NCBI GenBank assembly: GCA_965644295.1
Contig: CBFFRP010000319.1
Coordinates: 1-64,000, forward strand
Direction: 5' to 3'
Origin: Paraphysomonas bandaiensis
Taxonomy: Eukaryota > Protista > Chrysophyceae
DNA: 64,000 nucleotides
Below are positions 1 to 64,000 of the stretch, in pieces (the stretch's first letter is position 1; every line of letters begins with the position of its first letter). A program made the position numbers and the translations under genes. The notes below the pieces were generated by a model. That model had not been told where the DNA came from. It saw only the letters and a program-made list of their open reading frames with translations, and made no database searches.

Positions 1-272
1 TTTGGTAAAGTCAATCGCTAGTAGTTATCACATGCATTCTATGTAGCAATGAAATACAGAATATACATGACTACAGTATAGGAGTAGCTATTGCAAGTAT
101 ACAAAGAAACTGAAAATATAGTAGCTGCTAAAGATATGATTTGTAGAACAGAATGTTGATGTTGGTGAATGACGTGGTTCCCAACTCACAGGGCTACAAC
201 ATCATAAACTTACTATATCTCCCTATAATATCAATCAGTCAATATTGCACTAACTAAAAGCGTAAATTAATA
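1..272 (+). repeat. 5' LTR (partial)
   Basis: Near-identical to 4831-5099 (a few transitions and two small indels); ends ...AATTAATA directly before the PBS. Confidence 0.93.
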
Positions 273-3200
273 TGGCAGCGGATGGAAATTTCACGAATGT
301 CGCCTCAGGCTCAAAGGTACCTCCCTTCGAGGAACTGAACTTCAAGAAATTCAAGAAGTTCTTCACCTCATTCCTCATGAGACACAATCGAGCTCATCTT
401 GTCCTCTCAAAGGATAAACCAAGGCACATTCATGATCTAGACTCTACAGTCCCAGCGGGAGCTCATATGACTGATGCACAGAAGAAGCGACTACGCAAAG
501 CGAAGAAACTCTGGAACACCCGGAACGAGACCGCGTACTCCTTCCTGATGGAAGTGTGCAATGCTCACCCAAAAGCAGGCACAACAGCGGCTCTCTACGA
601 AGGAAGTACAGCAAAAGGGTTACTACAGGCACTGGAAGAGAGATTTCTCAATGTTGAAAAGAATACAGTACAGGCAGAGGAGCAGAGTTCGTCGACAGCG
701 TTGAAGCCCAGGCCAAGATTCTCGAGAATCTAGGTCGTGAAGTCACGGAAGACGACAAGCTCACTCGACTAAAGGAAGGTCTCACAGACAAGAGATATTC
801 CCAACTAGCACACAGCCTGTATACAGCAAACGATGTGACATACGCAAGAGCAAGCAGCCTAATCAAAGGGTATGAAAACACATCATTCGGCAAGCATGCG
901 TTGCAAAATTCAGGGGAAGACAGTGTCAATCAAGCAGTGGATGACAGTAAATGGAAAGAGCACAAGAGAAAGGGCAGATGCAATAAGTGCAAGAAACTTG
1001 GCCACTTTGCTAGGGAGTGCAAGACTCCAGAGCATGTCATAAAGAGGATGAAGGGGACAAGATCACAGAGAAAAGATAGAGATCACAGAAACAGGGGTGA
1101 TAACAAAACAAAGCTACCTGTGTGTGAGATATGTGACATCCCAGGCCATCAGACTAAAGACTGCTTCCACTTGAAGACTGCTAAAGCTGCAGTGGTCAGT
1201 TCTAAACGGGGGCGAGACTCTAGAAGGGAAACGGCACCCTACAAGAACAAGAAGAAACCGCGAGTGTCTGTACATGATTCAGAAGATGAAGCGGGATACG
1301 AATCGATGATATGTGTGGAAGAAGAGGTGAATCTAGCACAGAGCATGTCAGATGTTATTTATTTAGACAGCGGGTGCAACAAGATGATCCTTACCTCCAA
1401 AAACCACATGACCAACCTTCAGCGCGCTGATAGGCAGATGTCCACAGCGAACAAAGGTAAACTGTCAATACACAGTGTTGGCGATGTAGGAAGCTTTAAA
1501 AAGGTGTACTACGCACCTGAAGCAAGTAAGAACCTCGTAGATATGAAGAGCATCACAGATAGGGGTTGTGTTGTGACGTTCGATAATGATGAAGTCGTCA
1601 TTCGAAATAAGACTACGAACAAGACACTCATTAGACAGAGAAGTGTTAATGGATTATATCCAGTTCGACTCGAAGACTTACTTCAGCTTGGAGAAGAATC
1701 CTCAGCAGCACTTGAGGAGCAGGGGTTTGATGACCAGCGAATTCTATGGCACAAAAGACTTGGCCATGTCAACTATGATAAACTGACTGAGTCCGACCGC
1801 CGAGGCCTAGTTGATGGAATAAATCTGGACAAGAAATATTTCAGAAAAAAACACAAAAAAACGATATGCAAATGTAATACCTGCATGCGATCGAAACTCA
1901 CGAGAAAGAACTTCAGGACTCCACGCCAGTTGATGAACTTAGACAACAACCCAAAGGAGAGAGGGGTGCTCAGTGCAGATACGATGGAAGTCCTAAACAC
2001 GCCATCGATGGAAGGCTACAAACATGTGTTACTATTCAAGCACAGTGATGCAAAACATGTATGGGCTTATGGGTTGAAAAACAAGACTGGGAGTGAAGTG
2101 TTAAAGTGTATGAAGGACATGGTAGAGACCCAACTTGTCAAAGAAGGATTGCAACTACGACGATATCATGCAGATGGCGCAGGAGAACTAGTAGGGCAAC
2201 ATGTCAGGCAGTACTTACGTGAAACCACCAGCACAAGGACTGTACAGGTTACTTGGACTCCACGTGACACACCCGAAATGAATTCGCTATCGGAACGCAC
2301 TAATCGTACAGTGAAGGAGATGGCCCTTGCTATATTGCTCGATAGTGGCATGCCATCAGTATTTTGGTTCAAAGCAGTCTTGCATGCTGTATATCTGATC
2401 AACAGGTTACCTACGAAGACAACGAAAGGATACATCTCACCTTTTGAGTATATTACTGGAACCGCACCAGATGTGAGTGACTTGAAGATCTGGGGCTGCA
2501 AGGCATGGGCTATTGTGCCGAAGGAGCAGCGCCGCAAAGAGTGGAAAGAAAAGGGAAAACCTGGATACTATATGGGACAATGTCAACAACCTGTTGGACA
2601 CCAAATATATATTCCAGACCTGAATGCTATTATTGTTGCAGTCAATGCACAGTTTGATGAGTCAATTCCAGAGCGTTCACAGGAGTATTTCGACGAAATA
2701 GATAATCTACAAATCGACACCTCAGAAACAGCAGAGAGTGTAAATGACTATCAGTACCTGGTGGGCCTCAGACATCTTGATGGACACCTGTGTTATGTTA
2801 CCACCAGAGTGATAGAGAGAAGAGGAGTCATTGTTGCATATAGGAGATTAGATATGAAAGGAAATACTACCGAGGAGCAAACTCCAATTCATATCAAAGA
2901 TGTAGTAAAGATGACTCACTCTACAAAGTGTCAGACCGACAAGTTTAATAGTTTGCGAAATGAGTTGGATCAGACTTGTAATGACAGTGACAATGAACAG
3001 AGGACTCCTGACCGCTCAAATCGGGGCGCATCTTCAACAGGTGGGGCAGATCGAAATCCCAGAACTGAAAAACGACCTCGAAAAAAACGGCACATTGTTA
3101 ACGTTGGTGTCCTCGGCGATGTCTCATTGTTTCTTGATTCCTCCAACAGCACAATTAAAGAGCCACAGACGCTGGCAGAAGCAAAGAAGACTCCACAGAG

Positions 3201-4744
3201 AACATACTGGATTGAAGCTACCAGGAAGGAGGTGCACAAGCTTGAACGAAGGACATGCTGGAAGATTGTCCGAAGGCCGAAACACCGAAAAATCATAAAA
3301 TCTAAATTGGTCTTTAAAGTAAAGCGCGACCATCTTGGAAAAATTAAGAAGTTCAAAGTTCGACTTGTGGCGAAAGGGTTTACTCAAGAACAAGGAGTCG
3401 ACTATAATGAGACATTCTCCCCAGTAGCTAAAGGTGTATCATTTAGGCTAGCACTAGCACTGGCTCTGCGATACAATCTGCAACTCCGTCAACTCGATGT
3501 AGAAACGGCATTTCCGTATGCAGATCTGGACGAAGACGTGTTTATGTCTCCACCTGCAGGAATAGATATTCCACAAGGCTGTTGTTTGAAGATTCTGAAG
3601 AGTTTGTATGGCCTAAAACAAGCGCCTCGAAATTGGCATTCAATGCTGAAGGACAGTATAAAGGCGATGGGGTATAAACAATGTGTTCTTGACCCATGTT
3701 TATTTGTACTCAAGGGTACTGATGATAACCTACATATGATACTTGTGTATGTAGATGATATCATTGTGCTCAGCTCTGACAGCCGTCATATTGAAGAAGT
3801 CATCAGCGCCTTTAAGACTCAATATGCCATGCAAGATATGGGGGACCTTAAGCATTATTTAGGTCTTACCATTGAGCGTCATAATGGCCAGATTAAGTTA
3901 CATCAGTCTGCATATGCTAAAGATGTTGTGGCCAGATTCAATCACTTGTTGTCAGAAAAGAAGAGACGGTGCAAGGCAACCACACCTCTACCACCTGGCC
4001 TAAAGTTGTCCAAGGATGCAAAAGAGGAAGAAACTCGAAAACAGAGAGAATACGTTGATGCATTTCCCTATCAATCTGTTATTGGTGCCTTAATGTATTT
4101 GGCAGTGCATACTAGACCAGACATGGCATATACAGTAAATCTTCTCTCCCGGTTCACCACAAGACCCACGTACGCTGCATGTCAAGCTGCTCTGCATACT
4201 TTATTGTATTTAGAAAATACAGTTGATCAAGGTATCATATTTCCTAATTTCACAGATGAAGACCCTCTATGTGTGTACTCTGATGCAGATTGGGCCGGAG
4301 ATCTGGATACATGCAGATCCACTACAGGGTATATCGTATATCTGTGGGGTGCTCCAATTGTGGCAGTCCAGACTGCAGCCAACAGTGGCTACGTCGACTA
4401 TGGAAGCTGAATATATGGCTGCATATGCTGCAATTCAGGAGATTGTATGGATACGAGGGGTGATGACAGAGCTCGGAATTCGTGGATTTGAGCTCAGTAA
4501 GAATGCGTCTCCAACAATCTTGAATATGGACAGCAAGAGTGCGATTGATCTAGCTCAGAACCCGGTAAATCATAAACGTTCCAAGCATATTCGGATCAAG
4601 TATCATTGGATTCGAGAGCAAGTGGGAGGCTGTATCGTCAGGCTGAATCATGTGCCAACGGCAGAGATGACAGCAGACGTGATGACTAAAGCCTTGTCCG
4701 AGAAGCTGCACTATCAGCATGTGCACACTATGGTATCGCACTAA
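272..4744 (+). pseudogene. Copia gag-pol polyprotein with two frameshifts (~680 and ~4360)
   Basis: Gag continues in another frame as AEFVDSVEAQAKILENLG...LKEGL; two CCHC knuckles (CNKCKKLGHFAREC, CEICDIPGHQTKDC); protease YLDSG; GAG-pre-integrase WHKRLGH; integrase D-D-E; RT YVDD; RNaseH YSDADWAG continuing in a shifted frame as WQSRLQ...STMEAEY...KHIRIKYH. Confidence 0.93.
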
Positions 4745-4792
4745 GTAGACTTGCTCATCACAGTATATTCTGATATGTTCATTGAGTGGGAG

Positions 4793-5099
4793 TATTGAAC
4801 TACAACCAACTCCTACGTGCGTACTTGAAGTTTGGTAAAGTCAATCGCTAGTAGTTATCCTGTATTCTATGTAGCAATGAAATACAGAATATACATGACT
4901 ACAGTATAGGAGTAGCTATTACAAGTATACAAAGAAACTGAAAATATAGTAGCTGTTAAAGATATGATTTGTAGAACAGAATGTTGATGTTGGTGAATGA
5001 CGTGGTTCCTAACTCACAGGGCTACAACATCATAAACTTACTATATCTCCTATAATATCAATCAGTCAATATTGCACTAACTAAAAGCGTAAATTAATA
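4793..5099 (+). repeat. 3' LTR, 307 bp, TATT...AATA termini
   Basis: Begins right after the PPT; identity to the 5' LTR ends at 5099. Confidence 0.88.
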
Positions 5100-6337
5100 G
5101 TATGTGGCCGTACAGCCGTATAGCGATTTATATTATGAGTACTAACTAATAATTTATTTTACAACAGGAACATGCAATACTTGTCCTTGGACCAGAGATG
5201 TAGTTTACATGTTTGCATGACATTACGTACTACGTACAGTGAAATGATGCATATATAAAGAGCTAGCATTAAAATGAGAACGATTTACCGAAATCAAACG
5301 ATATATTCCTTTGAATTACTTTACTAAAAGATAAATTAGGAAAAATGAAAGTGTATACATTATAGATAAATACGAATTCTGCACTTCCTTGTGTTTTACA
5401 TAATATTCGATTCCGAAAACTACTTTTTGCACCGAAGAGAAGATCTTATGAAAGTCAATGTAGGCGTACTACACAACCTCTCATTTTATTAGGTACTCTC
5501 TCATGCATTCGCTCTTCTTCTTGTCCATTATTTATCTTCTTTCTTCGTCGTGTCATGTCAATAAAGATTCTCTCTACTTTTGTTTTCAGACGAACCGCCG
5601 TGTCTTCTTGCTTCTTCAGCGTATTGATGTTCAGAGCCTCCTCACACAAACACTTAAATTCAGGTGCAGCAGCCAAGTACGGTGTATCTCAGAACTGTTA
5701 TTTCTAGGAAATATGCTCATAATGAGACACTCTCAATTGATGTGGCCACAATGACGTATCAGGTAGTCTCTAATGATATCACTTAACATATTCCAATTCT
5801 ATTAATATCACATTACCAAACCAATTCTTCCATAATATTATCTGATCTTCAATTGACTAGATAATGATCCTTAACTATAGATACTCTTGTCACTGTATCA
5901 TACTAGAGCTATGCATAAGAGTCTGTGAGCAGATCGGCATCCTCTGTATATTTTTGTTCAGAGATGCCTCTAATATTGAGACAACAATTATCTGTACTCC
6001 AGCTGTAGTTATATCTCACTAATATAGAGTATTTTTGCTTCAATATATTTCCGAAAAATAAGATGTTGACTGTCCATATGCATAGTGGATAAAATCAGTC
6101 CTGTACTGTATATTTCTGTATTCCATGTCGGTATTCCATATTGACAGGTCATCGAAATCCAATTGTGATATTCTATAAGCAGGAATTTTCTACTCTTTTT
6201 CCAGTCCATCCAGCCAACAGGTTTATGGAGGTGTATGTCTACACATATCTAGACATCCTCCTATATAGAGAGATAGACAACTAACTTCAGTCATTTTCGT
6301 CGACAAAGTTATCCCAAAAGACAAATCCCTTTCTTCT

Positions 6338-41084: not shown

Positions 41085-44000
41085 ATGGGTGATGATTTTG
41101 AGGAACAACTTCAGGCTCTTTCTCAAATAGAAGACCTGAAAAAAGAGTATGAGTCTCTATTGTTGTTACGTGAATCCAACTCTCCCATTAAAGCAGAAGA
41201 TAGCAGAAAACAACATGATTGCAGTCGTTTAAAATCAGATTTAAAAAAAACTACTGCATTTGTTAAAAAAGTTCGTGCTATTAATGCCGAGGGTCTCTTA
41301 CAGTGCATACGTGATGTTCAGTCTCTAAATTTAACGAAATATATAAGTGAAATCGTATCTGCTATCGTAGAAACAAATTTTAAAGCAACTGATGTTCCTA
41401 ATGTCATTAAACTTTGCAATGAACTTCATCTTAGGTATGATGATTTCACAAGTCCGCTGTTGTGTGGGCTCAAAGATTCCTTGCTGAGTTCTTCCGATGA
41501 TGACTCGGGGAAGAAAAAACGAATTCAGCTGAGAATGATGATGGAGCTATATCAGATAGGGTTGTTCCGCGAAGAAAATTTCTTTAGTCAACTTTTGCTT
41601 GTCTTAACGGGAAAAACCGCTTCACAGTAAGGCCAGAGCGATTGACAAGTGCTGTTGTAACAATGTTGTTTACGCAGTCAAACGGTGGATCTTGCTGGTC
41701 TCGTTACCTTTGTGAAGTATGGATCTGAGATTTTAATGGGGTATCACCCCCGAAGGTGCGTTATACTTCGGTGTGTGCAATATCGTTATGCTGAGTGTGC
41801 AGACATCATGTGTTGGCCCAACAAGCCGGGAAAGCCGTCAGCGATATACCAACCAAAATCTTAGCATCTCCTAGGCTATGTAACGAACTCCAGATGCAGC
41901 TCACTGCGGTGACTGATAAACTTGCGGAGGACCTAGTAAAGGCTCACAAGGAGCTACGAACTAAAGAAAAGAAAAGTGAGAAGGATAAGCAGATACACGG
42001 CAGGTATGTGTAGGTTTACGTGATAATCGTACAAGATAGCACATTTCAGACTATTGGCGTAGTTGTATTGGATCTGTATATATAATGGAATAGGCATGTA
42101 TTTATGGTTTTGCAACACAGCCTTAGCGACCAGAAGGCCACGGAACTAGAAATGGCCAAGCGTTTATTCGAGAAGCTGCTCTCTTCCCTGTCTTCCATTT
42201 CTGATTGTACAGGACTCGATCTGGTACCACAGCTACAAGAGGAAGAAGAGAGCACGGATGGGTCAGGTGGAATTTCTCTTTGGGAAGGAGCTGGGGGAGC
42301 AGGGGCGGATTATGGTCCATGGGGAGACGCGGAGACGAAGGCTTTTTATGAGGAGCTCCCGGATTTGCTTGTTATGGTACCTCTTGCGGCATTAGGGCTC
42401 ACACCCGAGCAGGTATTGCGATTCCAAATTAAGAGGTGTAGTAAACTATAATTTCTAATTAAAATAATTACGCAATGTACGATGACATCAGTTATTGCTA
42501 CTTATCTCTAGTGATTGTGTTAACCCAGTGCTCCATTTATCGCACCCATGATAATTTTTTTGTGGTTTAGGCAGCAGAGATAAAAGAAAAGTGGAAGTCC
42601 TCGAAAGAAAGGCAGGCGATGGGCGATGGAGACAATACTATACCAGAGGAATCTAGTGTATCTGACGAAGTGGAGAAAGAAAAAGTCGGTGACACTGAAA
42701 TGGAGCGAGTGGTTCAACTGCAAGACACTGAAGAAGAGGAATCGGAGCAGAAATCTTTTACTGAAGATGAGGGGGACAGAGAAGAAAGTGGAGATGCCGC
42801 TGGTATATCTATGCACAATAAGCTGATGACATTACTCCAGGAAAAGCTTCCAGAAGCCATCAATCGACAAAAAGCAGATGAATTTTGTGTTAGCTTTTGC
42901 TACTGCAACACAAAGAAAGCCAGGAAGCACTTAGTGAGTTCCCTCCTCCGTGTTCCCCGAACTCGCTTTGAGTTGATTCCGACTTATGCTAGAATTGCTG
43001 CCTCTCTTGCCCGCATTTACCCAGATATCGTCCCTCCTTTACTGGATGGACTGCATAAGGAGTTTCACGGGATATTCAAAACGAAGCACCAGTCGCATAT
43101 CGAAAGCAAAATCAAGAACATTCGATTCATAGGGGAGCTAGTCAAGTTTGGCGTAGCCCCCCCGATAATGGCATTCCGCATATTCAAAAAATTCTTTCAG
43201 GATTTTTTACATCATAATATTGAATTATGTGCCACATTACTAGAGACCTGCGGCCGATATCTCTATTTAGCACCCTATACTCACGAGAGACTGGACAAAG
43301 TTTTAGAGACTGTGATTCGACTACGTCGTGCCAAGAACCTGGACTTCCGTCAACAGACGGCACTGGAGGCTGCGTATTTTGCTGTAAAACCACCCGAGAG
43401 GGCAGAAAAAAAGAAGAAGGAGTACAGTGATGTCCAACTCTACACCCGCTACCTCATATTTGAAAAACTGAGCAAGAAGAGTGTTGATGGTGTTATTCGC
43501 CAACTACGCAAGCTTCCATGGGGGGATCCTGTGGAAGATATTGAGCGCATAGTTGTCAAAGCTACTCTCAAATTGTCCCGTCTCAAATATACTAACGTGC
43601 CTTTGGCAACGGATTGTTTGAGTGGCTTGTCGAAGTATCACCCAAACACTGTGGTTCGACTTGTTGACACCGTGTTTGAAGAACTCTCTCGTGGTTTGGA
43701 GGCTCCACACAAGAGAGAACAGCAGCGCATGATAAGCTACGTTCGACTAATTGCAGAATTGTATAACTTCTCTGCGTTGTCTTCTTCAACCGTATTTGAT
43801 GCGATGTACATGATTCTGTCCTATGGCTATCACGAGGACCCCGTCGCAGTTGGTTCTGTAGGTGGCAACAACACTGTTGTGTCACTGGAGACAATATTCA
43901 AGCCTAAGAGATTCGATACCCGTCGCCCATGTGAGATTGATGCGCCCTATGATTGTTTCCGAATTCAGCTGCTCTGTGAGCTTATCCAAGGATGTGGAAT

Positions 44001-45402
44001 GTATTTTGTTCGTGGAATAGCGAAAGTAAAACTCGATCAGTTTCTCATGTATTTTCAAAAGTATTTGCTCTGCAAACCCAGTCTGCCGTCCCACATCGAA
44101 TTTTCTGTCTTGGACATGTTTGATAACCTGGAAATGTATGCGCATGAAGCCATGAAGAAAGAGAGGTCTAAGGGTGGCAAGGGCAAGAAAGAGGTAGTGA
44201 GCACAGAAGTATGCTTCAAACGCTACACTTCTCTAGAGGAGGTATCTGCAGCGGTACACGAGTTAGAAGAGAAGCAAGATCAGGATGAAAGGGAGAGACG
44301 TACTCGTACCGGTGAAATGGGCATGTCGCCTGATATGCATGGGGATGAAGAAGATTATGGTGACGATGGGGAGGACGAAGGAGAAGGAGACGATGATAGC
44401 CATGGCCGAAGGGGTGGTCGCAGTGCGGAGAGCCTTCATGATGACGATGAGGAGGAGGACGATGAAGACGAAGAGGAAGAAGAATTTGATGATAGTGGTG
44501 ATATCGCACGAGCGGAGGCAGCTCGTATGCTTGAGCGCATGCGTGCGGTTGAAGAGGACGAAGAATTCGAAAAAGCATTTAAGAGCCTTATGCTGGAAAG
44601 TGTGGAGGGAGTCAAACCTGCAGTTGGTACGGTACGATCTGGCACTGTAGACCGAATGGCGATGCCAGCCTTCCTACCTCGTCCGAAAAATATAGTATCA
44701 TCATCAGAACATAGAGAGAATGACAGTGATGAAGGCAGTGATGATGACGATGATGACGACGACAATGAGAAGAACGGACCTACCACGAAAGAAAAAATGC
44801 AGTTTAAGTTGCTGGGGAGGGACGCTAAAGGAAGAGTGGAGACTCGTCAGATATTGATACCCAAAGACAACAAAATCGCACTTAAAGTTCAGCAGGCTGG
44901 AGAAGCACAACGGCTGGAAAAAGAAAAACTTAAGGAAAAGGTGTTGCTGTATGAAAGTATGCAGAGTGTTGATGGTCAGTACTACGGATCAAGTGTAAAC
45001 AACACTAATCCGGTGGAATATTTGGGAAACAAAGACCATTTTTCCAAATCTCCGAGTCAACCAATTATAGAAAGTAATCGCTGGAAATCTAGTGGTGGAG
45101 CAGGGAAGACATCATCCTCTGCTCCCGCAACATCTGCCTCCTCGGGAAATACTTTGAATTTGAGTGAGTTCTTAGCTGAGTCCAGTGCGGCCGAAGCAAG
45201 ACGTTTCAATACAGCTGGAAGGGGGACTGTTGGAAGTGCAGTGGCGGCCACAGTCACCGGAGGGCGAGGTGGAAGGGGTGCTGGGGACCATGGCAGAGGG
45301 TACAAAGGAGGGGAGCATGGGAGGAGTGGAGGATATCGTGGAGGGTACCGAGGTGGCTACAGAGGAGGGGGAAGAGGAGGTGCTGGTGGGAGAGCTGGGT
45401 GA
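41085..45402 (+). CDS. UPF2: Nonsense-mediated decay factor UPF2 (MIF4G domains), multi-exon
   Basis: LKSDLKKTTAFVKK, LNLTKYISEIV, FYEELPDL, FIGELVKF, LLETCGRYL, LRKLPW, acidic region, RGG tail. Confidence 0.95.
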
Positions 45403-46432: not shown

Positions 46433-49400
46433 TTACAAGGTATTATTACTTTTGCGAAGCTTCTTGTACAGTTCTATTAACACGAACGCATCCAGAGCGG
46501 CATAAGCTATCTGCTCGCTACACAGTGGGCGCAATTGCCAATCTGATGTCTGCATCGATTTATCTAGCCGGTAGCCCAGGACTTCTTTACACAAAGTCGC
46601 CAAACCTGCCCCACAAGTACTATAACTAGATATCTCATGCACCCCTTCTATGCATTGATAGTGATGAGAATCGGGAAAACTTTCTCTCAAGCGATTTACA
46701 TCTCCACTCAACTTATATCCTGTGTGCACAACAGTAGTTAGCAATGCAGACGAAAATCCACTATATACTAATTGCACCTAGTTTTAAAATATTTCGGTCC
46801 GATAGTAACCTCGACATAAGGCCTGCATAGGAATGTTGAATATCGGTTCGTTTTGATTCTCCAAACAGGCTACCGCTGTCAGTATCATCACACGAGCCGC
46901 AACTATTAGTGGATGTCCAAGCAGGCTCCAGAACCATTAGATCGAATATAAATACAACTTTCGGAGATGCCACCTGAAGGAGACTACACTTGTTCGCATG
47001 ACCGTGTCCAAACGGTCTCCACTCTACATCCAAAGCTATAACTCTTCCATCGTCACAAGTTTGTGTGTCTTTCTCCAGAGCTCTAGCAGCATGCATGAGT
47101 GTTTCCATATCATTCACAATAACCACCTCTACTCCATACACGTCAATCGTAAGTAGCGGCAGGAGATTGTCGCCATCAGCACCAAATTCTGCATCCAATT
47201 TCTTATCAGAGGGGACAGCGAAGAGCTTCTCAGATGGTTGCAGAAGACTTCCGAACTCGTCTTCGAACACCTGAAATCGACATAAAACTTTCGTGGCAAT
47301 ACTCTCTGCATGCTGATTTATTAACAGACGGCATATACGTCGACATGCTTCCACTTTGCTACAACGATCGCCGATATATGTTGTGAGTGCCATCCAATTT
47401 AACTCAATATCCTGCACGCAATGTCGTACAAGAAGTTCCTCTAACCTACTGACATCCAATGCACTATGGATATCAAACTGCTTTACAATTTGTACAATCT
47501 TCACTGGAGTTGCTTTATTTTTCTCCAGATACAGGACTAAGGTCCGAGACAACTCCGTTTTAAAGTCCTCTTCCGCTGCTGCATTACCACAGCAACGAAG
47601 GGTGTATTTGTAAACCTCTTTGAGGGCTTCCAGACATGGTAAGCTACATTCGACACTAGTCATCAAAGTTCGTAATAGAGAATACGTGAGTACAGGAGAA
47701 GGACTATGGCCTGGGACAGTTTTAGAGAGACTTTGTAGGATAGTTCCTAATAGCTTCCCTTGTTGTTTGGTTGATAATACTAACAAATCCAGAGAGCGAA
47801 GTGCGGCGCAAAGAAATTCCCCTCTCTCCTCTTCAGAAGGTAACTTGAAAACAGAGCGAGCCACAGCATCATGTACTCGCATCTTCTCCTCCTTGGAACG
47901 AATACAAATCATGAGAGCCCACACGTGTTGCAGATACACAGTCATTAGAAGGGTTCGGTTGTTACATACCCTAAACTGTGTTACGTACTGATCAAGTATC
48001 TGGTCACAACATTCCTCGCACGTGGACTCGATCACCCTCCCACTATGTGAATTCGGTTCGTATGTGGAAAATACACCACGAAGATCGTTCAAATATGGGC
48101 CCAAACCCAAAGGCTCACATACATCATTTCCCAACCCGCTGAATTGTGCTGTGGTCAATAGATATTCGACCAATTGGCGTTTGGTTTCGCAAAGTTTGAC
48201 TGCACCTGTGCGCAAGAACCCTCTGTAAGGGAGCGAGGTCATAGCACTGGACACAGCCATCTGAGACGTACCATCGACAAAACAAGCTAGCAGTTCCAAA
48301 GTAATTGAGTAAATGAATGCAAAAGGCGGTAGGTAACCATGCAACTGCCACTCAGCAATGAAGTCAAATGCTGCAGGTATGTTCTGCAGGCTGCAAGCGG
48401 CAGAAAAACATATCATAACAAAATCTAGTCTGTCTGCTTGTACGGTCAATGCAACTGCTGAACGCAATACCTCGTGCTGGGACTGTGATAGCAATAGTAC
48501 CAGCATTTCAATTCCTTCCGGTCGGCCAAGAATAGCACACGATTCCATAAGAGGAAGCACAAGGTCCACAAGGGTCTTACTCCTACTTTCAACACAAACA
48601 CTTCCTGTGGTGATAGTGTCCATACATCCGACGATATCATTAAGAATTTTCTCCGCGTTAGCCAAATCGCCTCCTAATCCTCTCATCAGCCCAATTACTG
48701 TATCCCACTGAGGAATAATTCCTTTACTACGTAAAAGGAGGTAGGCTGATGTTGCTCTTTCTGAATCCCCACAGTGAAGGAATCCTCCAGCAATGAAATG
48801 CAAAAAAGGAGAGTCAAAGTCAACATCACTTTCCACTGCAACACAGAGAAGATCCCAGGCCTTTTGGGAACAGTGGGAGTGAAAAAAACCATCAAGAGCT
48901 GCTTCATAAGTGAATTGGGTAGGTGTTAAATGGATAACTGGGGGCACGTCAAGTTCAGGTAGTCCAACCTGACTCACCTCCACCATACGACTAACAATAA
49001 AACAAATCTGATCACTCCATTTACGCTTGCGGCATTGATGTAACAGCGTTACAAAGTCATTTTCTGTGAGTTGGGAGCAGTCCTCCGGTTCGAGACGATC
49101 TAAGAGCTTCCCAATGTCATGAAGGATCACAGACGCACGCAAACTCTCTGGTGCATCTGGACCAAGACATCCTGCGTATAGCTTCTTCTCAGACAAATTT
49201 GCATCTTTAATGTCTACGTATCGTTTGATATACTCACTGAGACCTGATAAGCGCTCCGTGTCTATCGCTTTAACATCTGTAAGCAAATCCACATATTCAC
49301 CAACTTCCGAATACTCGCTCCTGTGTCGATAATAATACTTGGACACTATATCGAGGGTGAGACTTGTCCACTCGATTTTCTCGGACTGCATGTCCCGTAA

Positions 49401-50097
49401 AACATGAAGCAGTCCTTTCAAATTACCTAATCTCACAAATGCAGACAAAGCTGCATTGTAAATGGATATGACTACTTTACCATCTGCATCTCCGATCTGT
49501 GCACCGTTGTGTGCACTGACAAGAGAATGTGCATCGTTGAGAAGGACATAAACTTTTTCCACAGCAACATCCTTGTCATCCAAATTACTTACAACTCGTA
49601 TCAGCGTAACAAAAGTTACTACATTAGGTAGGTTTTTCCCTCCATGTATCATGTCTTTGTACATGTCAAATGCAAGGTTGAAATTGCCATTCCGTCCAAC
49701 GACATCAAGAAGTGCAGTTAGAGTGAACACGTCAGGCTCGTAACCGTCAGATACCATACAATCATAAGCTTTAAGTGCTATACAGTGATCATTGTTTCGT
49801 TGGCACATTGTGATAATCGTGTTGTATGCATATTTCGGTTGTATATGCGGCTGTCGTGATACACCTAATGAACTATCACCTGTACACATTGAGAGGCCAT
49901 CACATATAATACAATAAACTACCTTTCTCTTTAACAAGTATCATCCATTGAACATATTCAAATGCTTTTGTTGGATTAAAATGTTTGCTACCATTCTTCA
50001 TCCACTTAAATATGGGCCGCAAGAAGTCTCTTGTATCAGCTTTACTATTTCTAAGTATATCCACCACCCCAGATGATAGGGAGTCCTTGTGCCACAT
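46433..50097 (-). CDS. PPR-repeat protein fused to a DEDDy 3'-5' exonuclease (Mut-7/EXD3-like)
   Basis: PPR motifs (YNTIITMC..GYEPDVFTLTALLD..PNVVTFVTLI); ExoI ALDVEWRP, LQVAS, ExoIII DWQLRPL..QIAYAALDA; start codon uncertain. Confidence 0.85.
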
Positions 50098-53410: not shown

Positions 53411-54024
53411 TATATAGTATAAGGATATAATATTTGAATTAGAAGTTGGAAAAAATTAAGGACATTATTGCCCTGAATGGTCATCACCCTTATGGCTATT
53501 ATGATTGCTATTAAAATGGTGGGAACGTTGGCCTCGCATTGTAAACTTATTTACACATATTTAAATGGTGCTGTTTATGTGTGCGGTCGATTACATTTCT
53601 TTTCTCCTGACCTTGAGCTACAAGAGTAAGTTCAGCGCGATCCAAATATAGTAAATGTAGTAAATAGTTATGTTTATCTGTAAAACTGGTGTCGTGACTA
53701 GAAACAAGTAGCATTTTTTAAATTGGCAAAGATTACACAACAGAACTGAGAGGCGTTCTGTCCGAACTTTTGTAATAAAAATGGTGATAACACCACCGAT
53801 GCAAAGTGAATGCTATGAATGCTGGTAATGTAAAAAGCTTGGTGCTATCTGCCAAACTAATGAAAAAAGGATATCTGCCGAATTCAAAATAATAATCATC
53901 AAGGACAGAAGCCTCCCTAGGGGTTTTTGGATGGTAAAAAAGCTCGCCTTCTCCTCTTGTCGCTTTTAATCTCGAGTTTGCGTCAGAGTGTGCAGCTATA
54001 AACCATCGGTGGGACTCTCGCTGA

Positions 54025-54370
54025 GTACCTATAGGTACGTACCTATAGGTATACCTATAGGTACTTTTATAATTAAAATCGAAGGTACCTATTAGGTACC
54101 TCTGTCTACCTATAGGTACATTTTTGAGCAATAGGTGGTACCTAAAGGTTTTCGAATAGGTACCACCTATAGCTACCCAGTATACCTATAGGTACCCCCT
54201 AATACACGTACCTATTCGTCTCCCTATAGGTGGTACCTATGACCTCTAGATTTCCTACTGATAGGTATCCCTATTTATATTAAAATGTACCTATAGGTAC
54301 TGCCTACATGTATCAATACTACCTATAGGTACTACCTAAAAATATAATACCAATACTACCTATAGGTACT
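54025..54370. repeat. Left subterminal array of the palindrome TACCTATAGGTA and variants
   Basis: About a dozen full or half copies with irregular spacing. Confidence 0.92.
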
Positions 54371-54675
54371 ATAATTAGCAATAATAAACACAGTATAATA
54401 TATATATTGCAAAGTAGAAAAAGCAAGCAATGCAGATCTGTAATCATGAATGAGTAGACAAACTATGTATTCAATTAATATAGACGGCATTAACATAGTT
54501 CGAAGTAAAAATTAACGGCAATTAATTACTACTTAGAACCTACAAAATACATACCACGACAAATTTGAACCACATCGTAAGCTAGCTCCCAATCACCTGC
54601 TAAGAAGTAGAAGCATTGTGCACTTCAGAAGCCTTCACCGCCAATCTGAAGTTAACAGGGAAGTATCGTCATTGT

Positions 54676-56177
54676 TCAGACTGTCGTCGTCCTTCTTTGA
54701 ACCATACCCCAACGTTTGAACCATACTAACCTTTCATTCTTGAAAAAATTCAAATCACTGTCACTTATCACAAGCTCACGCCGGGAATCCCGAATAGGAT
54801 TCATACCGTCGGTCGCTCTGGAGCAAATTTCAGATGTCCATGCTTCTCGTGGAGGACCTAAAAGCATTTGTTGAGCCGTTGACTCAACCATGATGCTAGT
54901 CTGGTCCATATAAAGGCCTCAGGATCTTCATTTTCATCGAAATCGTAGGCTCCAATCATGATGCATACTGCCTCAATGGCAGTCTGCATATATGACCCCT
55001 TGTTGTCCACTTGATACTTTCGTGGACTAATACCTTTTCAACAGAATTACATCAATTGGCACAATATAATAAATACTTACCATTTTCCAATACTTCGGCT
55101 AATTCCCGTCTAAATGATGCAGTCGCCCACAAAGGCTGTGTGGAGAACAGCTTGGCGTGACAACATCTAATCTTGGTCTTCAAATTACACGACAATTTGC
55201 GAATATACTTCTTGACATACCTGCAATGATATTAGAAAAAAGTAAATAATATGAGCAGTATATACTTGCACGCCGAAAATGCAGACACCACCTCACTTGC
55301 TAACAATTTTTCATCAGCTTGCAAAGCACCTTCTTTATAAGCGAGAGATAATGCCTACTAGTGTGTTATTCACAATAATAATATAATAGTAGCAGATGAC
55401 TGGGCACTGTAAAATGCGATGCGGCACGATATATATATTATGCTGTACTGTATGATATGATATATATATAACGTAATGATACAATAATGAATGGTATAAA
55501 ATATATATATGTTATACGATATATATCATACGATATCATAATATTTGATATGGTTGTTCAAAAAACACAAGAGGTATCTAATACAATGATAGATATGAAA
55601 TGTATAATATAACGGTGTACGATATGTTAATACATGATAAAAGGAGGATGGTATTTGATGATGTGAGGGTATACAATATATGATGATATGTGATGCTATA
55701 TGATTCAAGATATGTGGCAGAGAAAACAACATGAATAACCTTGTTATGAGGAGCTTGAGTTGCAACCCCCTCCTTTGAAATCACCACCAAAATCAGCTGA
55801 ATCAGTAGGTCGAAGTGCTCTTCCACTGAAACCACATCTCCTGTGTCCAGTTTAACAAAGAGACGTTCATACATCATCTCTTTGTGATAAGCACGGAATC
55901 CTGGAAGAGTGGAGAGTTTTTCGGCGCTCTGGCGTCCAATGCACAGCTCATTCGTTGTGAGAACCGTCGCCAATATCCTGGACTGGACTTTCTTATGCCT
56001 GAAAGTCGTGTACACTGTCGAGTTGGACGAAGAGTTACATGGAGGCATCCTGGCTTCTCGAGGTGAAGCATCTGACTGTTCGGCGGCGAAGTTGTCGTCC
56101 ACGATGGATTGCTGTTGACAAGGCCTTTTCTGTGCCCTCGCAGACACAGCAGATGCAGTTCGTTTTCGCAGGGGCAT
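54676..56177 (-). CDS. Transposon-encoded orphan protein (4 exons; possible frameshift near 54910)
   Basis: Exon 1 56177-55740 (MPLRKR...HNK) and GT-AG-joined exons ALSLAYKEG..., YVKKYIRK..., GISPRKYQ...; ends at 54858, or at 54676 if frameshifted. Confidence 0.6.
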
Positions 56178-56450
56178 CTCAGAGTAAATTGTGGCATTAA
56201 GTCACCATGAATTCACATGTTTGAAATTCAAATATTCGCATACTCTCTGAATATATTCACATACTCACACTTCGCCTCTTTGCTTCTTTCTTTCATATAT
56301 GTAGTTATGTGATGCACTTCTTCGAAGTCAACTTCGAGAGAAGTCCAGGAAGTGTGTGCTATAATCGTGCACTCGTTTTTATATACAACACTGTAGTATA
56401 CTGCTGTACCGTATAACAGATTGCAGTAGATACGATCGTAGCAGTATATT

Positions 56451-59400
56451 ATGGACAGCTTGTGGAAATGCGCAATATGTCAGGGAATATTCAGTTCAAG
56501 TCAGAGTCTGGGGAACCATGGAAGATACTGCTCGCCACTGTCTTCAGAATCAGAGATTTGTACATCAGAGCAGTATTCTAAGAAACGAAAAGCTGCATAT
56601 GGACCTCAGGCTTACACTATTCATGATGATTACAATCAAGATGACAGTGGAATTGATGAGTACAGTGACTGTGAGGACTCATCAATTCCTATGTACATGT
56701 GGCAACATCAGAGACTGGAGGAAGCAAGCCCAACTGGAAATACAGAGTTTCCAATCTGTCATCCAGATTATGACGCGGAAGACAAACCACTCTCCACGTA
56801 TAAGAAGCTCCAGGAAGTGTTTTACGACAAGTCTTATGGCGTGGATGCATTGGGAGCTATGAATCTTGAAAGCTTTACTGAAGCTGTCAGCACTTCGAGT
56901 AATCATAACATGTCAGATATTTTGCTTCTCAAGTTGTATGCATTTGGAAGAAAGTGCAAGTTAAGCCGATCTACAGGAGATGCACTTCTGGAATTGATTC
57001 GCTTATTCAAACCTTGTGAAGAACTTCCAAAATCATGGAAGACAGTTGTGTCGAATTTCAAAAAGAGAACACAACATTACAGATATGTTGAAAAGTCTAT
57101 AGGTTGGCCATCTTCGTGGGAAATGGAATCTTGGAAAATTTCTGGACAGAAACCTGACGAAATCATTGTTCGAGCACGAGACCCATTGGAAATGCTAAGT
57201 TATCTGGCCGTCGACCCGACAATTCAGTTCTCGTGGAAAGAGCACGTTCATTATGATACATTTTCCATGACAGATATTAATACTGGTGAGAACTATGTTG
57301 GTGATCTCATGTCATCATCCTGGGCGAAGAACACGGAGCGAGTTATACGCCAAGAAAAAAATCGTGAAGGCAAATTAATGCCATGTCTACTGTATCATGA
57401 CGGGGTTGCTATGGGGCATGGTGCCAACATCAAGTCTGTGCCAGTCCTGGGGACATGCGGCAATTTCAGCGATGAGTTAATTCGGAAAAATATTGCAAAG
57501 TTTTGCTTAGGTTTTATTCCTGACATCACAAGCACGATAAGTGTCGAAGCTCTGATTTCTCATTTGATGGAACGTGGAATGAGCCGAACCGCAGCAGGGA
57601 AGGAAGTCAGGTGGTTTAACTTGCACTTGGAAAAAGAATTCTGGAGTATGGTTACGGCTCCTCTCAAAGCTGCTTCTTCTAGAGGTGCAGAGATGTATGT
57701 GTTAGGAAAGGGTTTAATTACCGTTTATACCTTTCATCCTTTTAGCATTGGAGATGACCCGGCCATCCATCGACAGTTTGGCTTATACGAAGGAAATTCC
57801 CGCTTTGCATGTGTTACATGTGAGTATCCTCTGAGGGCCGGTGTTTTTTATAACCCAGACCTTCATCCGAGGAGAGATGGCAATGCCATTGCTGAACAGT
57901 GCCGAAATGTGAATAGTGGTCAGCTATCAGACAAAGAAGAGAAGTATGTTCGTAAGTTACTTGATAATAGATGCATCATGCCGTTTGTAAACGCCTTCCA
58001 TCATGCGTTTATGGGCTACAACAACCATTGCTTCAATAATCCTCAAGACTTATTTCACCTGTTTTGTGCTGGTATTGCAAAAAGTCTTGTTTTATGGATT
58101 CTTAGCGTTGTTGACAGTATTAGCACAACAGTAGACCGAACATTTCGAAATATTAAGGGCGTGTTGGATGCCAGACTTAAGTTGATGCCTCAGGTTCCTG
58201 ATATGCCACACGTGAATTGGACAGTCTTCAAGAAAGGCTTGATGCACATTATGAGCAATAAAAGTAAAAAGGAAAAGGGTCACTCGACTGGTTCCGGAGG
58301 TGGATATAGATCAAGTGAATTCATCACGGCACTATTGCAACTTCTGTTTGCGGTATGTTTTTCTAAATTGTATTCTCTATATTATGTGCTTGACATCACC
58401 TTTTTACATTAGATTGGCACGGATGGTCAAGTGCTACCGACAGATACCAACTACAGTTATTGCAGCAAAAATTCACGGCACCTGCGTTTAGGCAATGTAA
58501 CAAAGAAAGTGTTACAAGCAATTAAAGCCGTGCTGAACGTCTATTTTGAGTGCAAGAAAAGCTGTTTTACTGATGGTGACATCCTGAATGTGGACCGTAT
58601 GTGCCACGATATGGTTGCTAAGGTTTTACTGGTATGGGATTTGAAACAAACACTTCTTGGTAACCAGCCATCAAGTCCATTAATGCGCAAACTCCATTCT
58701 GTAATGCATCTTTCACTTAATATTTCCATGTTTGGGGCATTATCAAAGTCTGATGCGGGTACTTGGGAATCAAGCAATCGCTATTTTACAACCGAAAACT
58801 GGCGACGCACAAGCAGGAGGTATACTTCTTCTAATGTGGAGATGCTAACATTAGCAATATGCCAAGATCATTGTCGAGTACTTGAGTTTATAGCCGCGTG
58901 CCACACACACGACACTGAATACATAAACTCTCTGAAGCCAGAAATTCCACCGGAGGTCGTTCTAGTTTACCCCATGAGAAATGTCAAACATGTGCGGTTA
59001 TGTGTTGATGCTAACCACTCCTTGTTTATTTGTGAAGAAGAAGGAATAGAATTGGAAGAATTTATTGGACACAAGGAATTATCTAGTAACTCCCTTACTG
59101 ATTTTTGTAAACAAGCTCTTGGTGATAAGAACTGGAACTGTTTACAACGTGGTGACATCTCGTTGAAGTTAATACAGGCCCTCACCTACAATGCCAACAA
59201 AGAGAGTGGCATTGGTAAAGGATTTCATCATGCCATGAAAGGGGCAGAGAGTCGAAAACCACGCTTTGATTTCATATGCATCCAAATGGAAAGTGGAGAC
59301 ATACAAGTTGCTCAAATAGTATCGATGCTTCAGTTGTCAGCGGCCAACAACACTAAATATCTCTATATTGTTCAATACATGGAAAAATGTACGACCACTA

Positions 59401-59828
59401 TTCTTGACCCGTTTTCAAAATATAAGTGGGAGGTACTGCGCTACAACAGGCGACGACAACCTCAGTTTTTTCAGGATATTATTAATTTTGAAAGTATTAT
59501 TGACACAGCTTTTATAATACCAGATTCTTCTTGCGATGTCGTCGTGGGTAAGCCTCAAATTTCAGATCGTTTTTGGTTTATTCCGAGGAAGTTTTTTGAT
59601 CGTTGTGGGTGGGATGATTTGGATTTTATTAACTGTCATCATATAGAGGGAATGCAACAATATATCAGACAAAATAGCTCCGGTGCAATTGTTCTTGAAC
59701 GTAATGTGCATGGCCACGACAGTCATAACGCAAACAATGAGAGTGGCAGTAGTGACCACTCATCAGAATGTGATAGCAATCCCAGTACTGTTTACAGCAC
59801 CGGTGACTCTTCTGACAATGACACATAA
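56451..59828 (+). CDS. Plavaka-like transposase, ~1105 aa (intron 58353-58412)
   Basis: N-terminal C2HC finger (CAIC..NHGRYC); LLYHDG..PVLGTCGN..LGFIP; IGDDPA..CVTC; DLFHLF; HSVMH..MFG..GTWES; 60-nt intron joins the two ORFs in frame. Confidence 0.85.
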
Positions 59829-59987
59829 TTAATGTTGCGCGCTTATTATTGATTATGATCATAGAATGCACAGCCATACTTGTTTAGTAATAATAATATA
59901 TAACAAAAAAAGATATATTATACTATTCACCGCTGTGTTGCCTATGTACATTGTGAAACTTAAAAAACATCTGATGGTTCAAAACTC

Positions 59988-60276
59988 AGGTACCTACAGG
60001 TCTTTCGTCTTATACCTATAGGCAACGAGTAGCACTACCTATAGATAGTACCTAATCCTTCGATACCTATAGGTGGGACTTGAGGTACCTATAGGTAGGT
60101 GCCTAACTCTTATCACCTATAGGCAGGGTAGCTAGGTATACCTATAGGTAGTGACAGCTAGGTACCTACCTATAGGTAGGGTCCTTAGGCATGCCTATAG
60201 GTGGGTACCTATTAGGTAGGTACCTATTAGGTACCTGCGATGGACCTATAGGTAGGTCGAGCGACCTATAGGTACT
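59988..60276. repeat. Right subterminal array of TACCTATAGGTA palindromes
   Basis: About a dozen full or half copies before the right TIR. Confidence 0.92.
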
Positions 60277-60807
60277 AAATTCGACCCACCGATGACACTC
60301 AATGTAGCTCCTGATTTAAACAAACTAACATCTTTGGTCGAAAACCAGCGAGCGTGGTTGTGATCTTTAAGACGATAACGATGCTGATGAAGACAATGAC
60401 AATGATTCAGGTGATTGCCTCTAGTTTATTTGTTGTAGAAAAATTTATCAACTATACTTTCTACACTGAATTACTGATGGAGGTTTGGTGCAATTTTTTT
60501 GAATAGTGTTGTTGGTAGGCCGCCCATGACATATCGCATAATTGTTTATAGACAAAAAGTCAAGCAAGTCGGAAACATATTAGTGCTCGATTACTATGTT
60601 GTTAATTAATGGGCTCTACTACGCATGTCGATTACTACAGTAGGATTGAAATAATAAAATCATGAAAACCTATGAATGCACAGCAACCATTCCACAAGTT
60701 ACGGTAATATTAGCCGTGGATCAGATATGGAGAATGAATAGGCGTAGTAACATACACAACAATGCACAATATGGCAGTATCTACATGTCGCTAATTTACG
60801 TCAATCA

Positions 60808-61077: not shown

Positions 61078-61191
61078 CCTGTAAGAGTCTTATGGTTATA
61101 AACAGAGCAGTGAGCTGTGTTGAGTTGAGAAGAGATATATATACAGTACATGTCAATCTCACTGCATAACAAAGCAAGACCAGGATCCACA

Positions 61192-62007
61192 CATACATAC
61201 ATACATACATACATACATACATACATACATACATACATACATACATACATACATACATACATACATACATACATACATACATACATACATACATACATAC
61301 ATACATACATACATACATACATACATACATACATACATACATACATACATACATACATACATACATACATACATACATACATACATACATACATACATAC
61401 ATACATACATACATACATACATACATACATACATACATACATACATACATACATACATACATACATACATACATACATACATACATACATACATACATAC
61501 ATACATACATACATACATACATACATACATACATACATACATACATACATACATACATACATACATACATACATACATACATACATACATACATACATAC
61601 ATACATACATACATACATACATACATACATACATACATACATACATACATACATACATACATACATACATACATACATACATACATACATACATACATAC
61701 ATACATACATACATACATACATACATACATACATACATACATACATACATACATACATACATACATACATACATACATACATACATACATACATACATAC
61801 ATACATACATACATACATACATACATACATACATACATACATACATACATACATACATACATACATACATACATACATACATACATACATACATACATAC
61901 ATACATACATACATACATACATACATACATACATACATACATACATACATACATACATACATACATACATACATACATACATACATACATACATACATAC
62001 ATACATA
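61192..62007. repeat. Perfect (CATA)n microsatellite, ~204 units
   Basis: Directly visible. Confidence 0.99.
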
Positions 62008-62203: not shown

Positions 62204-64000
62204 ATGGATTTAAATGATCCAGGTATATATACTGAACTTATAGATAGCATCGTCTTACTCTCTTTTATACATCTGTCGCTTAGTAGTCGATGAAAATTTA
62301 TTTGGTCAACAAGCCAAACAGCTGATGAAGCAGCAGTGGGTCCGCAGACAGATGAAAAACTGGTAATCTTCCCTCTGTATCTGTCCTGTATGTTTAACTA
62401 TACACATAGCAAGGACAACTACACGGACCCACAGCAGTATAAAGTGTTTTGTGGCACATGGAATGTCAATGGTCGGGCGCGATTGGATGCAGAAGGGATG
62501 ACTGACTGGCTGATACCGAGTGACGGTATTGAGCATGATATTTATATCATAGGCTTCCAGGAGATTGTTGAGTTGACCCCTGTAAATGTGGCGACTGACA
62601 TGATGGGCCCCCAACGGACCCAATTTTGGTTAGATAATATTGCAGAATGTTTTTCTAAGAATGCCACAGCGCGATATGTTAACATAGGGGTTAAGAATTT
62701 GGTGGGAATATTGCTCTGTGTTTATGTGAAAACCTCTCTTGTCACCGTAGTAAGTGACCTACGGTGGACAACTACATGTGTGGGTGTTATGGGTGTGATG
62801 GGAAACAAGGGTGCAGTGGTGACACGCTTTAATGTTCACAGCACACCAGTGTGTATAGTATGTGCTCACTTGGCCGCCTCGAGAGACAATGTCCAGGGGC
62901 GAAACAGCGACTACAGAAACATAATGGACCGAACTGTACTTGTACCTGAGAAGTATACGATGGAAGCTGCATCCATTGGCAAATCGGTGATGATGCAAAG
63001 CACTTGGGATGGCATTGATGACTCTCTTTTTGGAATATCTGACCACGATATCATATTCTGGATAGGAGATTTCAACTACCGAATCGATGTTTCGTTGTCT
63101 TTGGAAGACATTATGGCACTGCTACAGAAAGAAAACCTCATGGCACTGCGCAAGAAAGATCAACTGAACATGGAGCGAGAGGCCGGAAATGTCTTCCAAG
63201 GGTTTGAAGAGGGTCCACTAACGTTTCAGCCGACATACAAGTTTCAGCCAGGCACGGATGTGTATGAAACTCGACCAGAGAAGAAGTTGCGTCCTCCGGC
63301 ATGGTGCGACAGGATCCTATGGAAGGAGAGAGTCATCCCTGGATCAGAGAGCAAGGGTATTATACGGCTTTTGAATTACCGCATATCTCGCTTGAGACCA
63401 TCGGATCACAAACCGGTCAGTGCATCATTTGAAATAGTGACTCGGGTTGTCGACACCGTCAGAGAGAAAGCAGAGTACATGAAACTCATGCGAAAGCTAG
63501 ACAGAATGGAGAACGCAATACAGCCGAAGGTAGAGGTGGGGCCCCAGTTGGACATCATCATTCCACCTGTTCGATTCCAGGTAAATTGATACTTAAACAC
63601 CAGTGTGATGTATACTGTCTTACCTTTATCATTTATGGGAGTTATTTATGTTTTTTATTGCTCTATGTCATCCATTAATAGGACCGGAGGCAAAGCGAAT
63701 TTTATATTACTAATATCGGGACATCTCTTGCGAATTGGCGATTTGTGCCAAAGAATGAGGATGTACAGCTGAGCGCTCAGTGGTTACACGTGGAGCCGAA
63801 TATGGGAATAATTGCCCCTGGAGAGGTCAGTAACATTTCGTGTGTGTTGGGGTGCCTTACACCTGGTTTATGAAGCAAGCGAAAGTTGTGGTTGAGGTAT
63901 TTGTCGATTACCGGTCTCTAGATCGTGTATCGGCCGCTCTTGGTCCGGACTTTATCGTATCCAAAAAAAAAAGTGGTGACGTAAGTGGTTTTACATGTGT
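62204..64000 (+). CDS. Inositol polyphosphate 5-phosphatase (OCRL/INPP5B-like), runs off the window
   Basis: GTWNVN, IGFQE, MGNKGAV, FWIGDFNYR, PTYKF, PAWCDRILW, SDHKPV; an ASH-like segment follows. Confidence 0.92.

Follow-up and report, generated by a model that had tools for sequence, protein, structure and literature searches.

A Plavaka-type DNA transposon with palindromic subterminal arrays, very likely still mobile, in the marine flagellate Paraphysomonas bandaiensis

Features of the element

A DNA transposon of 6,291 bp occupies positions 54004-60294 of the stretch of Paraphysomonas bandaiensis DNA analysed here, which comprises positions 1 to 64,000 of contig CBFFRP010000319.1 (assembly GCA_965644295.1) and is referred to in full as the window. 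The element consists of a transposase gene and a second gene transcribed away from it, with short terminal inverted repeats (TIRs), subterminal arrays of a palindromic motif and a 2-bp sequence repeated on the two flanks as a putative target site duplication (TSD). These features are arranged as follows.

54002..54003, no strand: left TSD copy AC, directly outside the left end
54004..54013, plus strand: left TIR, CATCGGTGGG, exact match
54027..54367, no strand: left subterminal array of 341 bp, 11 sites of T-ACCTATAGGT-A, 8 of them exact
54253..56177, minus strand: second gene, head-to-head with the transposase gene, modelled from RNA contigs and spliced copies
56177-55740, 55354-55266, 55220-55081 and 55033 onward, minus strand: coding exons of the second gene, from RNA contigs
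56178..56450, no strand: region of 273 bp between the divergent start codons, from the geometry of the two gene models
56451..59828 including the stop codon, plus strand: transposase gene (exon 1, 56451-58352; intron, 58353-58412; exon 2, 58413-59828)
59992..60273, no strand: right subterminal array of 282 bp, 11 palindrome sites, 6 of them exact
60285..60294, minus strand: right TIR, reading CCCACCGATG on the plus strand, the reverse complement of CATCGGTGGG
60295..60296, no strand: right TSD copy AC, directly outside the right end

The 10-bp TIRs and AC flanks described in the original prediction, which was made from the sequence alone, were found exactly at these positions. In the 64-kb window, CATCGGTGGG and its reverse complement have only 2 exact matches, which are the two ends of the element. 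The same terminus is present at four other insertion sites, and it occurs as CATCGGTGGA in a diverged subfamily. The element starts with CA and ends with TG, as do the termini of the CACTA/EnSpm-Mirage-Chapaev-Transib (CMCT) clade, within which Plavaka transposons are placed and from which RAG1 descends. The G+C content of the element (0.403) is the same as that of the window (0.409).

The palindrome arrays that had been predicted at both ends were also recovered, the figure of 11 sites per end being the count with one mismatch allowed. The core 10-bp palindrome, ACCTATAGGT, has 14 exact copies in the window, compared with 0.06 expected, and every one of them lies within either 54027-54367 or 60065-60273. 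A sequence logo built from 52 sites extended the motif to T-ACCTATAGGT-A. In the right array, the sites are spaced by 20-28 bp, with a single gap of 51. No metagenome contig in the collection scanned showed the terminus-plus-palindrome pattern. Three nearby palindromes were found by a looser scan at 75 loci, which were rejected as unrelated repeats carrying neither the terminus, nor a transposase match, nor DNA similarity to the element. These 75 metagenome contigs (L015-L089), many of them with Ga01233xx or Ga01318xx identifiers, contain at least three copies of ACCTATAGGT close together and, as judged by their sequences, belong to some other type of repeat that uses the same 10-mer.

The transposase gene and its product

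The frame of the transposase gene begins with the ATG at 56451 and, after removal of a 60-nt GT..AG intron, stays open to 59825, the last coding base before the stop codon; it encodes a protein of 1,105 amino acids (aa). In a polyA marine metatranscriptome (run X15), a contig of 3,298 nt has exactly 58353-58412 spliced out, and the predicted open frame of about 1105 aa interrupted by one intron is thus confirmed in RNA. Assignment of this protein to the Plavaka type, as originally proposed, agrees with the Pfam profile search, in which the product of exon 1 matched the Plavaka family (PF18759) with 46.2 bits (E value 4.7e-12; curated cut-off 26.3 bits) over aa 204-550 and profile positions 2-325 of 325. 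No other Pfam family, including those of the CACTA type, was matched at E ≤0.1 by the product of either transposase exon.

When 1.84 billion representative proteins were searched exhaustively with HMMER, 308 relatives of the transposase were identified at E ≤0.001, with a best identity of 42%; the 150 matches listed are unannotated representatives. Ten relatives were looked up individually, and all ten derive from metagenome or sequencing-run assemblies and pass the Plavaka threshold. A word-based protein search with exon 1 found the element itself only, and an exact look-up of the window's exon 2 open reading frame (ORF) allele returned no record.

When the protein is aligned with eight relatives, of which most are full length, the catalytic residues D317, D435 and E753 are invariant, as are C454-x2-C457 and H729-x3-H733. 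Of these, E753 and H729-x3-H733 are encoded in exon 2. The D-D-E triad together with C(2)C and H(3)H is the arrangement given for Plavaka and its clade (PMC12730594), and the invariant residues therefore match the published Plavaka signature. A zinc finger at the N-terminus, C7-x2-C10-x12-H23-x3-C27, is also conserved.

An AlphaFold model of exon 1 was obtained with a mean predicted local distance difference test score (pLDDT) of 76.7 and a predicted template modelling score (pTM) of 0.70. When the model was searched against the PDB with Foldseek, all 44 significant matches were to RAG1 or to the amphioxus ProtoRAG protein (BbRAGL), the best with an E value of 3e-7. VIA-align placed model residues 151-634 on residues 458-865 of RAG1 (347 residues, Z score 10.4), and the corresponding Z score with HzTransib was about 6. 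The sequence profile search of solved structures gave only weak zinc-finger matches to the N-terminus, at E values of 0.37 or worse; hence, the link to RAG1 is visible only at the level of predicted structure.

Target duplication, insertion polymorphism and expression

A contig from marine metagenome X4 follows the left flank of the element to 54003 and continues directly into the right flank, containing one AC fewer than the joined flanks of the window. It represents an empty allele and fits a 2-bp duplication. A second full-length copy was found at another locus in three independent ocean assemblies (L001-L003). It is 99.4% identical to the window copy over 6,291 bp, has an open transposase frame with 4 aa differences, and is flanked by AT on both sides. 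The 2-bp TSD that had been proposed from the AC flanks thus agrees with a second pair of matching flanks and with the single AC of the X4 empty site. A 3-bp duplication fits neither of the insertions with two known flanks, which would read AAC/ACA in the window and TAT/ATT in the second copy. Shifted boundaries were likewise rejected, since only CATCGG ends with a 2-bp duplication fit both insertions and the empty site.

Additional insertion sites are represented by a left flank ending in AA (L090) and by right flanks beginning with GA (L094) and AC (L095), and two more left flanks were present in RNA read-through contigs. In total, at least five distinct DNA insertion sites were seen over independent assemblies. 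No target consensus is evident at these sites beyond the 2-bp length.

Spliced contigs of both genes were found in marine polyA metatranscriptomes, and in one of these the second-gene contig is deeper than the transposase contig. Given the near-identity of the second copy, the further insertion sites and the spliced transcripts, the suggestion that this is a young and possibly active family in a protist was upheld, and as judged by the sequences compared here the family is very likely young and still mobile.

One run contains a derivative with an internal deletion that joins 54841 to 59448. Contigs covering the ends of the element are several-fold deeper than those covering the interior, which, with the proviso that depth is not copy number, suggests that non-autonomous derivatives exist. 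Rearranged forms also occur in DNA contigs from X4 and X12. In these, 56395 is back-joined to 55072 and a replacement of 37 nt is found at 56384-56386, in the intergenic region, which suggests structurally variant copies.

The second gene

Minus-strand GT..AG introns, seen in RNA contigs, interrupt the second gene: three in its coding region (385, 45 and 47 nt) and one in the 3' untranslated region (195 nt). The last of these lies at 54357-54551, or as many as 3 bases to the right of this, and a loose polyA end in RNA contigs marks an alternative polyA site near 54451. The 273-bp region separating the two start codons is presumably a shared bidirectional promoter.

In the copies L001-L003, the spliced gene encodes a protein of 359 aa. 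A Paraphysomonas peptide from MMETSP1103 is 94% identical to aa 101-355 of this model and spans all of the coding exon junctions; its agreement across these junctions confirms the gene model, and the peptide suggests that the host is a heterotrophic chrysophyte. The window copy has two additional bases, TA, at 54908-54909. The frame is thereby shifted at codon 264 and a stop codon is reached at 54860-54858, giving a product of 280 aa. The extra TA is absent from all contigs over that site (four runs), from L001-L003 and from the cultured-strain transcript. As read from the sequence, the window copy therefore has an intact transposase and a frameshifted second gene. The element had originally been described as complete-looking, which holds for its ends, arrays and transposase, but not for the second gene, with its 280 aa versus 359.

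The ratio of non-synonymous to synonymous substitution rates (dN/dS) for the second gene is 0.37 in comparison with a diverged copy that is 88% identical in DNA, which indicates that the gene is real and under selection. At its start, the protein has a run of basic residues, PLRKR...KRP, that resembles a nuclear localisation signal (NLS). No Pfam match was found for the product, and a word search, in which the candidates were only of about 110-348 aa, revealed no relatives outside the element family. An ESM Atlas feature search with the first exon produced only sub-threshold scores, up to 0.77. Structure prediction from the single sequence gave an all-helical and uninformative model with a pLDDT of 32. 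Hence, the proposal of a two-gene family is supported insofar as the second gene is transcribed, spliced and under purifying selection. The description of that gene as divergent was not supported, since its product has no detectable homology outside the family, and the gene is frameshifted here. The product would be an accessory factor of the element.

Insertions of 15 and 19 nt distinguish the copies at the 3' end of the second-gene coding region (window 54662-54706), where the Paraphysomonas transcript encodes an extra 5-aa repeat, DDTVN, in the acidic C-terminal tail of the protein. This tail is thus a hotspot of length variation.

A diverged subfamily

A related element in a Tara Oceans contig (L014, positions 1-5410) represents a diverged subfamily. 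Over the transposase-coding DNA it shares 76% identity with the window copy, with synonymous divergence (dS) of 0.8-1.8 in three aligned pieces. The dN/dS values for the transposase are 0.10-0.13 in the two better-aligned pieces and 0.22 in the short third piece, and indicate strong purifying selection on the transposase sequence. L014 itself contains the transposase as three separate ORFs, the 5' half being absent, and this subfamily is apparently decayed.

The left end of L014 is CATCGGTGGA, followed by a diverged 12-bp spacer, and its terminus retains CATCGGTGG. There are 15 exact copies of ACCTATAGGT in the left 700 bp and at least 6 on the right, the left array being twice as long as that of the window element. 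An unselected 10-mer would seldom remain exact at the divergence of L014, and both the terminus and the palindrome motif are therefore functional. As the exact sequence of the motif, and not mere self-complementarity, has been kept across subfamilies, its conservation points to sequence-specific recognition.

Interpretation and alternatives

The features described above are best explained, with considerable confidence, by an autonomous Plavaka-lineage DNA transposon of the cut-and-paste type in a marine stramenopile flagellate, with a RAG1-like D-D-E transposase and a 2-bp target duplication. The transposase would recognise the CATCGGTGGG termini together with the subterminal TACCTATAGGTA palindrome arrays and would then excise the element, and reinsertion with a 2-bp stagger would generate the 2-bp duplication.

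Several points weigh against this explanation. Both flanks are known for two insertions only, and the duplication thus amounts to two matches and one empty-site contig. The right flank in the window reads ACAC, making dinucleotide slippage a formal alternative for the AC repeat. The terminus of the window element is CATCG, and that of published PlavakaB elements is CATCA. The depths of the contigs are not copy numbers. Finally, the frameshift in the second gene may be real or an assembly error, and if this gene is essential the window copy is not autonomous.

With respect to the protein that binds the palindromes, a comparison is provided by a Plavaka element of about 15 kb (L004-L010; L004:1-15001), which recurs in many lake metagenome assemblies and has a transposase 37% identical to that of the window element. 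This relative includes a gene for an intron-free transposase of 1,261 aa, a gene for an Ulp1-type C48 protease of 1,601 aa and three small upstream ORFs. Inverted tandem arrays of a 13-bp unit, TGCTAAACCCGGT, which contains the near-palindrome ACC-C-GGT, are present at its two ends, with at least 23 copies on one side and at least 80 on the other; the contigs stop inside these arrays or in adapter sequence. The accessory genes of the lake relative show no similarity to the second gene of the window element. In another relative (L011, L012), no terminal arrays were found within the sequence that these contigs cover. Since symmetric ACC..GGT repeats are common to the window and lake families and the accessory genes are not, binding of the palindromes by the transposase is mildly favoured; it may proceed via the zinc finger or via the region aligned to the dimerisation/DNA-binding domain of RAG1.

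Alternatively, the palindromic subterminal sites may be bound not by the transposase but by the second-gene product, acting as a dimer in the manner of TnpA of maize En/Spm to join the ends and perhaps to regulate the element. The second protein of En/Spm, TnpA, does bind 12-bp subterminal repeats, and retention of the second gene under purifying selection across diverged copies (dN/dS 0.37), its spliced and polyadenylated transcripts, present in one metatranscriptome at a contig depth above that of the transposase, and the basic NLS-like start of its product would all suit such a role. On the other hand, neither a DNA-binding domain nor a Pfam match was detected in the product, the word search among candidates of about 110-348 aa gave no relatives outside the family, and the structure model is of low confidence. 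Furthermore, the lake Plavaka has similar ACC..GGT arrays without a homologue of the second gene, and the window copy has kept its transposase intact while losing the last quarter of the second protein. This alternative is therefore considered possible but unlikely. A similarly unlikely proposal is that the orphan 359-aa gene represents a hitherto undescribed family of dimeric proteins, which would bind the TACCTATAGGTA arrays and either be needed for transposition or regulate it. If the second protein does bind TACCTATAGGTA, the element would be the first Plavaka with a defined two-component end recognition, and it would be a naturally active element in populations of an ocean flagellate, with insertion and excision trackable in public metagenomes.

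It is also conceivable that the arrays act mainly through DNA structure, as cruciforms or as single-strand hairpins formed during replication or cleavage, and not through protein binding. In single-stranded form, the two ends fold much more strongly than shuffled sequences (z -7.8 and -6.6), but strong folding is automatic for any repeated palindrome. In addition, each palindrome is 10-12 bp long, and palindromes of this length are too short to form a stable cruciform in duplex DNA. The motif has moreover been kept between subfamilies in its exact sequence, beyond self-complementarity, and a mainly structural role is improbable.

That the element is an immobile relic, with AC flanks due to coincidence or slippage and an apparent polymorphism due to metagenome assembly artefacts, could be argued from the single empty-site contig, its ACAC-containing flank and the frameshifted second gene, but is highly improbable in view of the AT/AT flanks at the second locus, 99.4% identical copies with open transposase frames, at least five distinct DNA insertion sites in independent assemblies, spliced transcripts from both genes and the strong purifying selection apparent in the transposase.

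Relationship to known transposon groups

Taken as a Plavaka transposon, the window element can be compared with two described subgroups. PlavakaA elements have TGT..ACA termini and 2-bp duplications, and PlavakaB elements of Agaricomycete fungi have 5'-CATCA..TGATG-3' termini with duplications of 2-3 bp (Kojima 2025, PMC12730594). The window termini, CATCG..CGATG, agree with PlavakaB at four of five positions and not with the TGT..ACA of PlavakaA, in a comparison made by termini only. The likeness to PlavakaB lies in termini that begin with CATC and end with GATG and in the 2-bp duplication of the window element. The CATCG termini had been regarded as a departure because they are not of the CACTA form; given the published PlavakaB termini and 2-3-bp duplications (PMC12730594), this view was abandoned, and the ends of the window element are close to canonical. 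The window element differs from PlavakaB in having the orphan 359-aa gene and no TET/JBP dioxygenase gene, and in its host, a stramenopile protist rather than a fungus, with a modest 46-bit match to a Pfam model seeded from fungi.

The accompanying statement that Plavaka transposases were described mainly from fungi was not sustained either, as Plavaka has been reported from red, green and streptophyte algae and from an ichthyosporean. Besides red algae, the non-fungal hosts include chlorophytes, streptophyte algae, a moss and the ichthyosporean Amoebidium. In the red alga Bostrychia moritziana, giant Plavaka elements of 17-19 kb, most copies of which are degenerate and weakly expressed, carry three accessory genes (PAG1-3) with methylase/SET and ParB-like/oxygenase domains, and internal arrays of inverted repeats for which an element-encoded binder has been proposed (10.1101/2025.02.11.637652). 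They resemble the window element as non-fungal Plavaka elements with accessory genes. However, the window element is only 6.3 kb long, has one orphan gene and carries its palindromes in the subterminal region of either end; the copies of this element are transcribed and differ little from one another. The EnSpm-Plavaka elements of the green alga Auxenochlorella have been reported as potentially active, with insertions polymorphic between haplotypes (10.1101/2025.02.07.637104). The evidence for recent activity is of the same type as that presented here, from another host lineage, the two being likened by description only.

Maize En/Spm, a member of the same broad clade, shares with the window element short inverted ends, subterminal arrays of a 12-bp motif over several hundred bp and a second protein. 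Both En/Spm proteins arise by alternative splicing of one transcript, whereas those of the window element are encoded by divergent genes. The elements differ further in their ends (CATCG versus CACTA), in the length of the duplication (2 bp versus 3) and in the motif, which is a perfect palindrome in the window element and an asymmetric sequence present in both orientations in En/Spm. No homology of the second-gene product to TnpA was found. Hence, the window element has the subterminal arrays (11 sites per end) and the second spliced gene characteristic of CACTA/EnSpm, but its termini, duplication length and Pfam families indicate that it is not a member of that group in the strict sense.

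The resemblance to RAG1 extends over the dimerisation/DNA-binding, pre-RNase H, RNase H and zinc-binding regions, all of which are covered by the predicted fold, with the ligands arranged alike. Sequence identity to RAG1, Transib and ProtoRAG is only 10-14%, the window element has no RAG2-like partner, and Transib generates 5-bp duplications compared with 2 bp here. As far as the structure model can be relied upon, this resemblance is at the level of the clade and not one of membership.

Plavaka is known almost entirely from genome annotation. In the searchable literature, no earlier report of a stramenopile Plavaka or of a Paraphysomonas transposon was found, nor any bench test of Plavaka mobility or end recognition. 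The element is a well-preserved and clean but ordinary example of a known group and does not represent a new type; with it, Plavaka is extended to a stramenopile, and the value of the element is that of a tractable model for the lineage. It is suited to bench work by its size of 6.3 kb, its defined ends, the near-identity of its copies and the intactness of its RAG1-like transposase; the empty site in a wild population and the spliced transcripts of both genes in ocean metatranscriptomes and a cultured strain are further assets. The motif conserved between subfamilies and the accessory gene under selection are both directly testable, and an active element could seed a genetic tool for chrysophytes.

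Genomic neighbourhood

The insertion site is overlapped by none of the ORFs scanned. Neighbouring host genes at 42619-45399, 46761-49934 and 62336-63586 are ordinary eukaryotic genes, the neighbours including a UPF2 homologue (MIF4G and Upf2 domains), a PPR-repeat protein and an endonuclease/exonuclease/phosphatase-family protein. To the right of the element, at a distance of 900 bp, there is a perfect (ACAT)204 microsatellite (window 61191-62007; 817 bp, 100% matches), which explains why that kilobase has an extreme GC skew of -0.73.

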